Assembly (NCBI RefSeq): GCF_033153115.1
Contig: NW_026889758.1
Coordinates: forward strand, 9,300,001-9,364,000
DNA: 64,000 nucleotides
From: Saccostrea echinata
Taxonomy: Eukaryota
Direction: 5' to 3'
Positions within the stretch are counted from its first letter, which is position 1; every line of letters starts with the position of its first letter. Below, in pieces: positions 33,276 to 45,544 of this stretch. A program made the translations under genes and the position numbers. The notes below the pieces were generated by a model. The model was not told the origin of the DNA, did no database searches, and worked only from the letters and a program-made list of their open reading frames with translations.

Positions 33276-33344
33276 GGGAGGTCCGGGTAGGCTCGGTTAT
33301 GATATGACCTTAATATAGGAGCCTAGCTATTTGACTTTCCTTTT
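33276..33344 (+). ncRNA. Candidate Y RNA (type A, copy 1)
   Basis: GGGAGGUCCG...UUGACUUUCC terminal stem with bulged C9; upper stem UAGGCUC/GAGCCUA; inner hairpin GGUUAU/AUGACC; T7 terminator; TATATAAA at -30. Confidence 0.72.
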
Positions 33345-35511
33345 TTTCCTTCAGATTTTATCAGTCTGTGAAAGTATTTATACGGTTAATCAAAAACTTT
33401 TCATAGGCTTCCTTTGAAGAAATAATATGGATTAAAAAATAACACAAGGATCATTTACAAAGAATTATGAATATGTACGAAGATGTTATATTTAACGCCG
33501 ATTTTTGTTCACATCAACAAAAGGCTCAACTTCTCATAAACCATTTTGTATTGCTATTTCACTGAGCAAAATTGATAGCATCCAATTCTTTATGAGTAGT
33601 TAAAATTGTATCATTCTTCAATGATTTTATCTTTTTAACATGTATATTGACTATTGAACATAACAATGCTTAATTTTTATAGATAGAATCGTCGGATTTG
33701 CTAGTGTGTATGTACCGGTATATATTGATTGTGATATATTTTTTTCCTTGTGGTCACTTTCAAGTTAAAAAAAATATACAAAGTTCCATTTCAAATTTTA
33801 AAAAGTTTAATTTCATAAAAACTGTTCACTAGACCAAAAAAAAGATAACATGGTCAACATGTGGTCTTTTTGAATATCTATGATTTAAATGCACATTACA
33901 TAGTGATTTAAATGCACATTACATAGCAGAGAAACATGCAAAAAATGAGAAGGAATGAGACGTCGAAATGCTGTAAAATATGTTTTAAAAAAATGAAATA
34001 TATTTCATAATGTATTGCAATAAAGATTTCTTAATAATCTTTCCGGAATAAATGTTGTATATATATTAATGAGATAATCTTTGCACGTGATAAGTAATGA
34101 AAATGTTGCAAATAATTTGCAACCTTTAACAATGGTTTCATTTGATTCTTTATGTAGATAGAAAAATTGTTTTGTGTATTGTCTTTCAACAATTTTTTAA
34201 TAAAATAGAAATTTGGTGTTATGATTCTCTATGATATATCAGTTAACATTGATTTAAAATCTCCATATAATTGCTAGAATGTCATGTATTTTAAATAGAA
34301 TGCACACATCAAAGAAGACAAATAGGATTTCTTCATACTAATACACTGTTTTTTCCCATTTGAGCCCCCCCCCCCTTTTCCATTTTTGAGAGTAGAGCAT
34401 CAAATCATATGTAATAGATTCTTCGATTAACAAAAAAAGATGGAGTAAGGACCCACTATACCTTAATATGCATTTTTATGACACAACTTTCGTATTAAAG
34501 TACTCTCGAGATTAACAAAAACAAACAAAAAAACACGCGTTTTAATGAAAAAAATTGATATTCATGACTTTTATTGTCCGAGTTCAATCCTCAAGAAAAT
34601 GACTTTTTTTTCTTTTTTATAATTTCTCATTTAATTATAACGGGGAAAAAAAAAATTCTTTTTACCGAAGAAAATGAGCTCAATGGGCCTTCGTAATTTT
34701 TATTTATTTATTTTTCAAAAAGAGAATTTTTTGCCGAGAAAATATTATAGTTTGTCACAGATTGTTCACAGACTGAATTTGGATTTTGAAATACTTGAAG
34801 CTTTAGGCATTTCCGACGCTTTGTCCACTTTTTGATATTAAGTGAAACATGTAATGGTGACTAGAAATATTCAACAAACGATAAAAATTGTCCCGGTCTA
34901 TGAGGGGAAAAATGTTATTTGTCAAGTATTTGTCAGTATCAATAAAAAGAAATTATCTCGTTTGCTGAAGATTTGACCACAAAAACGTGCGTAAAAAAAT
35001 GTTTTAAAAAATTTCTTTGAATCAATTTAAAAAAAAAAAATCAGAGAATAACTTTCTAGTCTTTCTGGATATAAACGCATAACTTAAAAAACGGAATTAT
35101 GGAAATGAACTTACACGTGTTGATAACCCAACATACAACACCCAAAAGCACAGATCGAGCTGTGTACGTATAATCACAAGTTGTATACCCGGTATGTATT
35201 TATGTATGTATGTGTATATTCGTGAATAGTCCTGATACTGGACTACATGTAAAGTCATTTGCATGTCTATGTCATTTCATCGATTACTTTAACTTCGACA
35301 ATGACAATATCATATATAAATGATGTTCAGATATTAACTGGACATAATTTCATGGGAAACAGAAAAGTAAGTGAGTGCGCAAAAAAGGAAAATCCCTTTT
35401 CTAATTAAGGAAACGAAAGCAAGAAGATTTTTTTATGCAAATTATCAACACACATTTTTGGATTTTTTTTAATCGTTTCTATTTATTAATATCAGTTTCT
35501 TTTACTGGATG

Positions 35512-35578
35512 GGAAGGTCCGTGTAGGCTCGTTTATTCTATAAACCCAATAAGAGTCTAACTATTTGACTTTCCTTTT
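35512..35578 (+). ncRNA. Candidate Y RNA (type B, copy 1)
   Basis: GGAAGGUCCG...UUGACUUUCC stem with bulged C9; UAGGCUC/GAGUCUA; inner hairpin GUUUAU/AUAAAC (compensatory relative to type A); T7 terminator; ATGCAAAT at -77. Confidence 0.72.
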
Positions 35579-36255
35579 TTTAAATATTAAATAAGCAACA
35601 TTCACACATATGCATTCCCCATTTGTTATACATAGTCAACAAAAATGGATCAATAGCAACAGCATTCGGTCAATTTTCACTTGGAAAGGCCTAAACCTGA
35701 CAATTCGAACATAATTAGATTATAATAAATATTCTTTTTATTTGTATGCATAGAAATAAAATGTTAATATAATAGCAGTCTTTATATGTATCACAGTAAC
35801 AAACCACATACTGAATACGCTGAGCTTTGTATTACAGTAGCTCTGTAACAATTACAATAGCTTTAAGATCTTATCAAAAACTTACACTTAAGCACTACAC
35901 ATGTACGTTATCTCTACCCCTATATGTGAAGAAGACAATATGAAGATTTTACACACAAAGATTTCAAAGAATTCGAAATCTTTATTGCTTTTAATTCATA
36001 TATATAAGAAAATATCCATTGATAGCTTCTATATATTAAATAAAGCAGTTCACAAAATATTCTCTGTCCCCTCTATATATACATGATATATTCACTGTCA
36101 GAATATTGTATTTTTTACCCTTATGATATCCTGATAATTGCATTTACAATTTTCTTATAGTAAATGTTTAATTATCAGTTAATTAGCTAATAAAACCAGC
36201 AAAGTACATGTTGTAGAAATCAAGAAATCGGATGTTCTGAATTCTTGATAAATAT

Positions 36256-36259
<4 letters not shown>

Positions 36260-36338
<79 letters not shown>
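36260..36338. repeat. (TA)n microsatellite
   Basis: Seen directly. Confidence 0.95.
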
Positions 36339-42836: not shown

Positions 42837-43164
42837 AAGTGTTAGTGTTATTGGTGACTAGAAATATTCAACAAACGATAAAAACTGTCACAGTCTGTGA
42901 GAAAAAAAATGTGATTTGTCAGTATTTGTCAGTGTCAATAAAAAAAATATCTCGTTTGCTGAAGATTTGACCACAAAAACGAACGTAGGAAAGAAAAATG
43001 TTTAAAAACAAAAAAACCAAATGATCTTTCTTTGAATCGGTTTTTAAAAAATCAGAGAATAACTTTCTGGTCTTCTTTGATGAATAATATAAACGCAAAG
43101 CTTATAAAACAGGGAATTATGGAAATGAATGCAATTGTTTATAAACATAACTTAACAACCCAAC

Positions 43165-44245
43165 TTAGGGCCCTGTCACACCAAGCTGCGTCCACACGGA
43201 GTTATTACGGCGTTGTAGAAATTCTAAAATCGCAGTGAAATCGCAGGGAAATTGCACAAATTTCTGTAAATTTTTTACAATGTCAAGATGTCACGGCGTC
43301 CCTACGGCGACCCACGCGTTTCTACGGCGTTCTCGCGGCGTGCTACTGCGTTCACACGGAGATCTCTTCGCGATTGACTGTGCTTCCGCAGAGCCTTTAG
43401 GGCGTGTTAGGAGTTGTCACCTCGCGTTCACGGCGTTCTCACTGCACTTGCTGCGTTCACAATAAGTTCACCATGCGTTTTTCACTATGGATATATATTC
43501 AGAAGGCGTGTAACACATTTTTTTTTAAGATTCAAGTCACATGACGAAAAGACTTCTAATTATGCCAAGAAATATTCTTTAATTAAAAATGATCTATTTG
43601 AATAATTTAGTACTAAATTACTGATAGTTTTATTATTAAAACCCTTCTTTTTTCAATTATATCAATTCAGATGTTTTTTTCTTTCTTTGATTTTATTATG
43701 AATGTAAAAAAACACACTGAAAAATTGTTATAAAATTTAAGTAATTCCATCGCAACTCCATTGAAACAACAGAACAAGTTCTGGTGTAATTTTAACTTCC
43801 CAATTCTACTCCCATGCTCCTGGTCAGGAGTGCAACAAATACATTAGAATTATTGCTGATCAAATATGAGGGCATTGCTCTTGTTTGTGAGTTGACTGAC
43901 AACGCTCTAACAATGCCGTAAAAGCGCATTGTGATCGCCAACGGACGCGGTAGAAAAGCCAACGGAGCGCAATGCGTTGTTGGAGATCTCACCGCGCTGC
44001 TGAAACGATCATACTGCGTTTCTACTGCATTCTTATCAGACGGCGATCACACGGCGCGTACTTTGTGCATGCCCAAAGTGCGCGCCGTCCCCTGGCGATC
44101 TAGGAGACCCTACCGCGTTCAGTGGAGGTCTCGTCGTGTTGTCACGGCGCTGTAGGAGACTCCACTGCGCTCACCTCGGCGTTTTGCATTTTTATGGACG
44201 CCGTGCGATCGCCGTGAGGACGCAGTCCCTTTGCGACAGGGGTTT
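43165..44245. mobile_element. PIF/Harbinger-like MITE
   Basis: Imperfect TIR (GG)CCCTGTCACA / TGCGACAGGGG with GC-rich CACGGCG subterminal repeats; absent from the paralogous site near 35140. Confidence 0.65.
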
Positions 44246-44496
44246 CAAAAGCAGAGAACTGTATATGTGTAATCACGAGTTGTGTATATTCGTGAATAGT
44301 CCTGGACTACAAGTCATTTCACGTCAAAAGTAAAAAAAAAAAAAAAAGCAACAGTGAGTGCGCAAAAAAAGGAAAATCCCTTTTCTAATTAAGGAAACGA
44401 AAGCAAGAAGATCTTTTTATGCAAATTTTAAACACACCTATTTCTGTATTTTTTCAATCGTTTCTATTTATTAATATCAATTTCTTTTCCTAGATG

Positions 44497-44563
44497 GGAA
44501 GGTCCGTGTAGGCTCGTTTATTCTATAAACCCAATAAGAGTCTAACTATTTGACTTTCCTTTT
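44497..44563 (+). ncRNA. Candidate Y RNA (type B, copy 2)
   Basis: Identical to 35512-35574 over 63 nt while flanks carry substitutions and indels; T6 terminator. Confidence 0.7.
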
Positions 44564-45544
44564 TTAATATTTAAATAAGCAACATTCAGACATTCCCCAT
44601 TTGTTATACATAGTCAACAAAAATGGATCAATAGCAACAGCATTCCGTCAATTTTCACTTGGAAAGGCCTAAACCAGGCCTAAACCAGACAATTCAAACA
44701 CAGTTAGATTGTAATAAATAGTCTCTTTATTTGTATGCATAGAAATAAAATGTTAATATAATAGCAGTCTTTATACGTATCACAGTAACACATCACATAC
44801 TGAATACAGCTTTGTATTACAGTAGCTCTGTAGCAATTACAATAGCTTGAAGATCTTATCAAAAACTTACACTCAAGATATTAAGTACAATAGTTCACAA
44901 AATATTCTCTGGACACATTTCATCAATGTAAGCTGTATTCAAATAAACAAGAAGACTATAAGGTGTAGGTAATATTATATCTATATTTGATCAGAACACT
45001 GTATATATTTTCATTTCAATTTTGATAGGAAAAAAGTTTACAAAACCCATGAAACATGCCTGAAGTATTAGTCACATTCAAGAACTTTTATACCAGATGT
45101 CACGCAAGTTTATTCTGCTCTGTCACCATACTGCTCTGTAAGAACTAAGTGTGAACTAATAGTGTCTGTTTAATAATATAATTCGATAGGTAACTGCACA
45201 GGATAGAAAAAGTACATGTAACACATATTATAACCAGTTCATAGTATTCAACGATCATTTAATTAAAATCATTAAAGAAACACAGGACAGGCTGGGTAAC
45301 AACATGGTGTTAAAACAGCAATTAACATCTCAAAAACTGACCAATTACCCCTGCGATGTCAGTCAGCTTAAGATAGGTGAAATTCTATATAACATTTCAG
45401 ATTTTTTTAATTCTATATCTTTTTAATTGAATTTTCAGGAAATTGCATTCAAATTTACACATATTTGAATATTTTCCAACTAACCGATTACAGATTTTCT
45501 AACCGATTACCATTGTTATGACCAAATAACGGGTTAACCAGTTA

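Follow-up and report, generated by a model that had tools for sequence, protein, structure and literature searches.

A family of Y RNA/stem-bulge RNA-like genes in the oyster Saccostrea echinata

A stretch of 64,000 nucleotides (nt) from the genome of the oyster Saccostrea echinata (assembly GCF_033153115.1, contig NW_026889758.1, positions 9,300,001 to 9,364,000 of the forward strand), in the following called the window, contains four short units which quite probably are genes of the Y RNA/stem-bulge RNA (sbRNA) family, transcribed by RNA polymerase III (Pol III) and probably encoding ligands of the protein Ro60. Most work on Y RNAs and Ro60 has been done in vertebrates, nematodes and a few bacteria. 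The existence of a Y RNA/sbRNA family in an oyster is, in our view, real and well supported, while its novelty for molluscs is provisional. Positions given without a contig refer to the window; numbers preceded by C and L denote contigs and loci, respectively.

Four units with a common predicted fold and promoter layout

The units begin at 33276, 35512, 40172 and 44497, exactly where an initial annotation of this DNA had placed them, and follow each other on the plus strand in the order A-B-A-B. The first copy of type A (A1, 33276..33347) consists of a 65-nt RNA body (33276-33340) and a terminator of seven T (33341-33347), the first copy of type B (B1, 35512..35581) of a 63-nt body (35512-35574) which is likewise followed by seven T. 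In A2 (40172..40241) and B2 (44497..44565), the bodies extend from 40172 to 40236 and from 44497 to 44559 and precede runs of five and six T, respectively. All bodies are thus 63-65 nt long with a run of 5-7 T directly behind them. An extra G is present at position -1 of all four copies, so that the 5'-end is possibly located one base further upstream. Copies of the same type are nearly invariant, A1 and A2 differing by a single nucleotide at a loop position and B1 and B2 not at all. A 16-nt core (GGTCCGNGTAGGCTCG) gave four exact matches in the window, compared with 0.06 expected by chance (up to 3 mismatches).

For all four units the same fold was predicted: a terminal stem of 8 bp, with C9 left unpaired, is topped by an upper stem of 7 bp and an apical hairpin of 6 bp. 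The folding energies were 3.0-3.7 standard deviations better than those of shuffled sequences (z -3.0 to -3.7), with values of -26.4 kcal/mol and z -2.97 for A1 and z -3.71 for B1. Folding thereby bore out the pairing of the ends around a bulged C9 that the initial annotation had described, and the structure-preserving nature of the differences between the two types was confirmed as well. In the lower stem G3-U of one type is replaced by A3-U in the other, whereas the strings GGUCCG on the 5' side and UUGACU on the 3' side are identical in A and B. In the upper stem UAGGCUC pairs with GAGCCUA (type A) or GAGUCUA (type B), a G-C pair being exchanged for G-U, and the apical hairpin exhibits one true double change from G-C to U-A. 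The region between the stems is predicted to be less uniform. In the minimum-energy fold of type A, C9 is followed by two further pairs, with four nucleotides (A54-U57) bulging from the 3' strand; in that of type B, the region is an open 4 x 7 internal loop.

Two elements upstream of the units suggest how they may be transcribed. A TATA-like box resides at about -30 (A1 33244-33255; B1 35480-35486; A2 40140-40146; B2 44465-44471; all on the plus strand), more precisely at -31/-32 in each of the four units. An octamer-like box, ATGC(T/A)AAT, which is a candidate proximal element, lies on the same strand at -78/-77 in all of them (A1 33198-33205, ATGCTAAT, at -78; B1 35435-35442, ATGCAAAT; A2 40094-40101; B2 44419-44426). 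In the same genome, ATGCAAAT precedes the U6 gene at -78, combined with a TATA box at -31/-28, and the 7SK gene carries ATGTAAAT at -79 along with TATA at -31. ATGCAAAT was also found upstream of E, a member of the family described below, at about -79 and upstream of two U2 genes at -72. Since the background of this motif in the window is only 1.9e-4 per position, its positional agreement is not a matter of chance. TATA boxes near -30 also precede the RNase MRP and U6atac genes. At the level of sequence, the upstream Pol III promoters proposed in the initial annotation are supported by this agreement with U6 and 7SK. With both boxes placed as in these two genes and a run of T directly after the 3' stem, the units have what would be the expected look of a small nuclear RNA (snRNA)-type (type 3) Pol III gene in this genome.

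A third upstream element is a 17-nt distal box, GGAAAATCCCTTTTCTA, which is perfectly conserved in the four copies amid diverged flanks (plus strand; 33150-33166 at -126 of A1, 35387-35403, 40059-40075 at -113 of A2, and 44371-44387). The window contains no further copy of it, and none was seen in front of the remaining family members or of U6, 7SK, MRP, U6atac and U2. Read on the reverse strand (GGGATTTTCC), the box agrees, as a mere motif match, with the NF-kB/Rel consensus, GGGRNWYYCC.

Of the genes used for comparison, U6 is organized in long tandem arrays with a period of ~2142-2150 bp (C29:39327801-39347187, L032-L041; C159, C313 and C328), and a U2 array with a period of ~2218 bp is located at C80:602956-634186.

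Relationship to Y RNAs and sbRNAs

Attempts to assign the units by existing models gave a mixed picture. Searching the whole window against Rfam at gathering thresholds yielded nothing; for the Y_RNA family (RF00019) this cut-off is 38 bits. In a permissive scan, type A aligned end to end with Y_RNA at 18.8 bits (A1, over the full model; E 0.13 in a 201-nt search). The alignment covers the lower stem, the bulge, GGUCCG, GGUUA and UUGACU, and Y_RNA was the only Rfam family that threaded type A in this way. Type B gave no Y_RNA match at E<=10; its matches to U3, HOTAIRM1 and Plastid-rpl20 were disregarded as noise (E>1). Neither type matched the nematode sbRNA model RF01656. By Rfam's own criterion types A and B are not members of Y_RNA, and the comparison with the Rfam Y RNA and sbRNA models, proposed in the initial annotation as a check, gave at best the sub-threshold match of type A.

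A search of the whole genome with RF00019 disclosed a 69-nt unit on the same contig, 7.8 Mb away, which scored 36.0 bits and also reached 24 bits against RF01656. Two covariance models, R1 built from A, B and the 69-nt unit, and R2 built from 13 sequences, both partly trained on A/B, identified about 19-20 units with lengths of 58-76 nt, which are grouped on the contigs C9 and C12 in five clusters, each with all its genes on one strand. Besides the cluster of the window with types A and B (C9 9.333-9.345 Mb, plus strand), there are four others containing about 16 members. Three of them are on the minus strand, at C9:17126524-17144601 (loci L050, L059, L051 and L044), C12:3519963-3656757 (L057, L052, L053, L055, L054 and L063) and C12:14318768-14320515 (L065, L056 and L061), and one is on the plus strand at C12:22141256 and 22161380 (L058 and L064). 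The cluster of four genes claimed by the initial annotation is therefore correct for the window, but understated the size of the family, which amounts to about 20 genes in five clusters genome-wide. An additional R1 match on C14 (L060) was treated as spurious, as it had no promoter or terminator features and was gone with R2. A weak extra copy was seen at L044:412-469.

The strongest single link of the window units to the Y/sbRNA family was provided by a third covariance model, R3, made from only the 15 members outside the window. Applied to the 64-kb window, R3 recovered exactly the four units at full length with 54.2-59.8 bits and E values of 1.3e-12 to 3.6e-14 (A1, 59.8 bits, E 3.6e-14; A2, 58.8 bits; B1, 54.2 bits, E 1.3e-12; B2, 54.2 bits), and nothing beyond them at E<=10. 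Moreover, the members used for this model are more canonical than those of the window. Types C to H contain GGUUAUCC, ACCCC and, in some cases, UG-CA; the UG-CA step of the upper stem is kept in types C, D and E, and GGUUAUC(C), containing the loop motif UUAUC, in types C, D, E, F and G. In the paralogues C to G the strings GGUCCGGAG, GGUUAUCC and CACCA-UGACC are very close to the sbRNA consensus. Their Y_RNA scores (H, 37.3 bits; C, 36.0 bits; D, 30.5 and 28.3 bits) do not pass 38 bits in any case, and C and D gave ~24 bits against RF01656, whose cut-off is likewise 38. Most of the other family members also possess a TATA-like box at about -30. Some members give a damaged impression. H2, G3 and E have no T run directly behind the 3' stem, the next one being at least 8 nt downstream, and F6 has a deletion in the loop. 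Within the oyster family, no other types are as divergent or as stripped-down as A and B.

The structure of the family was examined with 13 distinct sequences. In the two stems, 94% of the cells form standard pairs, compared with 25-53% in slid controls, and in 6 of the 15 pairs both partners vary (23 cells). Neither the pairing score nor the covariation score was equalled by any shuffle. These values are to be read with the caveat that the alignment of the 13 sequences was fitted to the model. A scan of metagenomes with a family-wide pattern gave 70 loci, four of which matched R2, a result that is uninformative on conservation in molluscs. These four are G+C-rich sequences on contigs of unknown origin, show the stem-bulge layout GGUCCGGAG...GGGUUAUCC...UUGACC and scored 34-42 bits (L085:1413-1486, minus strand; L094:289-480, plus strand; L125:2148-2277, minus strand; L089:1236-1317, plus strand); one of them has a 131-nt loop insert.

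Copy number, duplication and assembly

BLAST of the A1 gene including its promoter against the 923-Mb genome revealed only four copies, with identities of 100, 88, 76 and 75%. Exact matches of a 21-nt core were confined to the same four places, and with three mismatches the core was genome-wide no commoner than a reversed control. Since gene and promoter together occur only four times, a dispersed repeat or a fragment of a short interspersed element was rejected; the hundreds of decayed copies which the initial annotation had envisaged for such a repeat were looked for, with these four copies as the outcome.

The two A-B pairs are parts of a duplication on the plus strand. Segment 1 (32938..35892) carries A1 and B1, segment 2 (39849..44877) carries A2 and B2, and BLAST aligned both in collinear blocks of 79-92% identity with indels. 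Segment 2 comprises an additional piece of ~1.7 kb (41155-42849) between A2 and B2 that is absent between A1 and B1; an open reading frame (ORF) of 231 aa within this piece (41286-41981) had no Pfam match. A haplotype or assembly duplicate was rejected, as a divergence of 8-21% together with indels is too much for a collapsed-haplotype artefact. The segments are divided by two assembly gaps (36668-36828 and 37110-37249), N runs enclosing an island of 281 nt, and a third gap of 132 N (45545-45676) begins 980 nt downstream of the end of B2. This is the nearest N run to any of the genes; none touches a unit or a promoter. Each A-B pair lies on uninterrupted sequence; it is only through a scaffold join over the first two gaps that the pairs are placed side by side and at their present distance. 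ORFs overlapping 36597-36912 were disregarded, because they run across the first N run.

Taken together, these data bear on the question whether an unrelated hairpin, a repeat fragment or an assembly artefact might resemble a Y RNA by chance. The Rfam score of type A, which is not significant alone, and the joining of the two A-B pairs across gaps would be in line with such an explanation. It is nevertheless most improbable and already largely refuted by the copy number and by R3, a model trained without the four units that matches them at E ~1e-13. Also the promoter layout, common to U6 and 7SK, and the divergence of the indel-containing segments are at odds with it.

The duplication also allowed a comparison of the units with their surroundings. 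A1 and A2 are identical at 98.6% in the unit, 85% in the promoter and 80% further upstream, B1 and B2 at 100% in the unit and 88% in the flanks, in agreement with the initial annotation, which had reported zero to one difference between paralogues and indels in their flanks. The same pattern, with units above flanks, was observed for D1/D2 and F4/F5. Between types A and B, identity amounts to 81-83% for the unit and 71-75% for the promoter, beyond which they are not alignable. The genes might accordingly be silent or decaying duplicates, pseudogenes kept alike by recent duplication or gene conversion, a possibility that fits the position of A and B as the most divergent types with the lowest Y_RNA scores, and also the missing adjoining T run of H2, G3 and E and the loop deletion of F6. 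We consider this quite unlikely. All four copies in the window have kept the TATA box, the -78 box, the 17-nt distal box, every base pair and the T-run terminator; units of the same type are 99-100% identical against 80-88% in the flanks, and though A and B are ~18% apart in the unit, all stem differences between them keep the pairing.

Elsewhere in the window, a remnant of a non-long-terminal-repeat retrotransposon was recognized on the minus strand (19697-22802). A reverse transcriptase domain is encoded by its 651-aa ORF, and adjoining ORFs gave endonuclease-like and weak PHD-finger matches. Outside the window, the mitochondrial COX1 gene is present twice on contig C294 (9957-11282 and 26455-27780; L072 and L073), 16,498 bp apart and with 8 TGA codons for Trp; the mitochondrial genome seems to have been assembled there as a concatemer.

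Ro60 and the possible role of the RNAs

The genome was inspected for the protein partner of Y RNAs, as the initial annotation had advised. The TROVE domain gave 29 matches in the genome, mostly intronless ORFs of ~500 aa with TROVE and vWA_Ro60 domains. The best Ro60 ORF, at C53:1451497-1452984 (L024), also contains both domains and matched residues 62-534 of human RO60 with E 4e-136 and Xenopus Ro60 with 3e-126. Its product is 100% identical to the NCBI RO60-like protein of Saccostrea echinata, the next best match being from Ostrea edulis with 87%; the probable mollusc of the initial annotation is an oyster. Several TROVE ORFs are arranged in tandem clusters (e.g., C40:1.28-1.45 Mb, C83:0.22-0.60 Mb and C72:0.10-0.19 Mb). 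As indicated by these matches, the genome encodes a Ro60 orthologue and many TROVE paralogues. An expanded family of TROVE-domain proteins in bivalves has already been published, where a co-occurrence with Y-like RNAs is not discussed (PMC8382680).

According to the literature, the Ro60 site is formed by a helix from which a cytidine bulges out and whose other strand likewise contains a bulge, in Pol III transcripts that end in a U tail (PMC4726728). Mutations that remove the bulges or alter the conserved sequence abolish Ro60 binding. In its predicted fold, type A reproduces this anatomy closely, with the 8-bp helix, the C9 bulge, two pairs and a 4-nt bulge on the 3' side, type B less cleanly. 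With a three-nucleotide bulge opposite the bulged C, another feature given for the site (PMC4726728), the folds of A and B are compatible but not identical.

Transcription, Ro60 binding and function of the type A and B RNAs are what we infer from their sequences. An snRNA-type external promoter, made up of the two boxes at -78 (ATGCWAAT) and -30 (TATA), would direct Pol III to initiate at the run of G (33275/33276 in A1) and to terminate in the run of T. The ends of the resulting transcript of 63-65 nt plus U tail would pair as an 8-bp helix of GG(G/A)AGGUC with GACUUUCC, leaving out C9, and would be surmounted by the 7-bp upper stem and the short apical hairpin. The most likely binding partner of the RNA would be the oyster Ro60 orthologue or one of the many TROVE paralogues, because the bulged-C helix has both the sequence and the shape of the Ro60 site of vertebrate Y RNAs. 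La may bind to the U tail.

Compared to the vertebrate Y RNAs (RF00019; hY1, hY3, hY4 and hY5), the oyster units have the same pairing of 5' GGNNGGUCCG with 3' UUGACUNNCC including one bulged C, GGUAG and GGUUA at the positions of the Rfam consensus, a predicted oligo-U end, a putative external Pol III-type promoter with TATA at -30, clustered genes, and a Ro60 gene in the genome. They differ in that the large internal loop is reduced to a 6-bp hairpin plus 7-9 unpaired bases and in that A and B do not contain the GUG-CAC (UG-CA) motif in the upper stem, which is needed for the function of Y RNAs in DNA replication. With the nematode sbRNAs and CeY they share multi-copy tandem clusters, a putative Pol III-type promoter for each gene, the bulged C in the lower stem and the short length. 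The sbRNAs (RF01656; ceN72-3/ceN74-2), apart from belonging to another phylum than the molluscan units, are characterized by UG-CA and by the motif UUAUC at the 5'-end of the loop (PMC4450293), in place of which type A has UUAUG and type B UUAUU. Like CeY, A and B have kept the lower stem and not the replication motifs. The homology to Y RNAs claimed by the initial annotation for these unusually short RNAs is supported, above all by the family match of R3, but does not extend to Rfam membership and to the UG-CA and UUAUC motifs. Y/sbRNA-like RNAs of insects and amphioxus (Anopheles, Bombyx and Branchiostoma), which we likened by description only, are further invertebrate members, assigned on the basis of similar sequence and structure (PMC4726728); none of them is lophotrochozoan. 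The Yrl RNAs of bacteria, bound by Rsr, have a Ro-binding stem as well but are much longer with extra domains and, according to the same review, highly divergent and not homologous (PMC4726728).

There are several points that weigh against the assignment of the units as Y RNA/sbRNA genes with Ro60 as partner. A and B miss the Y_RNA cut-off widely, with 18.8 bits and no match, respectively, and even the best members of the family are 1-2 bits short of it. With 63-65 nt, the RNAs fall short of the length of Y RNAs, stated as 100 +/- 20 nt (PMC4726728), and the inter-stem region of type B, in the minimum-energy fold, is an open internal loop rather than a clean bulge. The scan of metagenomes with the core of A/B gave 0 matches, and a search of sequencing runs with the type A unit brought up none. 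The high identity of the duplicates could partly reflect gene conversion and not purifying selection. Finally, membership in the Y/sbRNA family does not guarantee Ro60 binding, because in Caenorhabditis elegans CeY alone was recovered with the Ro orthologue, while the sbRNAs were not (PMC4726728).

The last point leads to an alternative in which the units are genes of the Y/sbRNA family whose products act without Ro60, by taking part in another process such as the initiation of DNA replication or by association with other proteins. C. elegans sbRNAs are absent from ROP-1 immunoprecipitates and yet support DNA replication (PMC4726728, PMC4450293), and the oyster family is overall sbRNA-like with GGUCCGGAG, GGUUAUCC and clustered arrays. 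Types A and B, however, contain neither the UG-CA core nor the UUAUC motif, to which replication activity is tied, and the part they have kept best, the lower stem and its bulged C, is the Ro60 site. We therefore regard an action without Ro60 as rather unlikely for A and B; given that they lack both motifs, their role may be closer to that of CeY than to that of the replication-type sbRNAs. Binding by Ro60 or a TROVE paralogue is the reading we prefer.

In the oyster genome, ~20 genes for short Y-like RNAs, representing at least 8 sequence types, are accompanied by more than 20 Ro60/TROVE paralogues. It is conceivable, albeit speculative and with little probability so far, that the RNA and the protein half of the Ro ribonucleoprotein have been expanded together in bivalves, giving rise to combinatorial Ro-like particles. 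In such a scenario A and B could be an inducible subset tied to innate immunity or stress, since they alone carry the conserved distal box with its NF-kB/Rel-like reverse strand.

In the open literature we found no description of molluscan Y RNAs, a search outside which most papers in subscription journals and database-only annotations fall. As animal sources of Y RNAs, a review of 2015 names vertebrates, nematodes, two insects and amphioxus and no others (PMC4726728), and a survey of 2009 did not find Y RNAs in a lophotrochozoan (PMC2770079). The presence of a Y-like family in an oyster is less surprising in view of the fact that Y-like RNAs are expected wherever Ro60 exists. The oyster genes would fill a phylogenetic gap in the distribution of Y RNAs, and the family is missed by standard annotation because every member is below the Rfam cut-off. 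Types A and B would represent a very small natural Y RNA, essentially a Ro60 site with a short stem, which could help to define the minimal functional module. With candidate RNA partners at hand, the role of the TROVE expansion in bivalves becomes directly testable.

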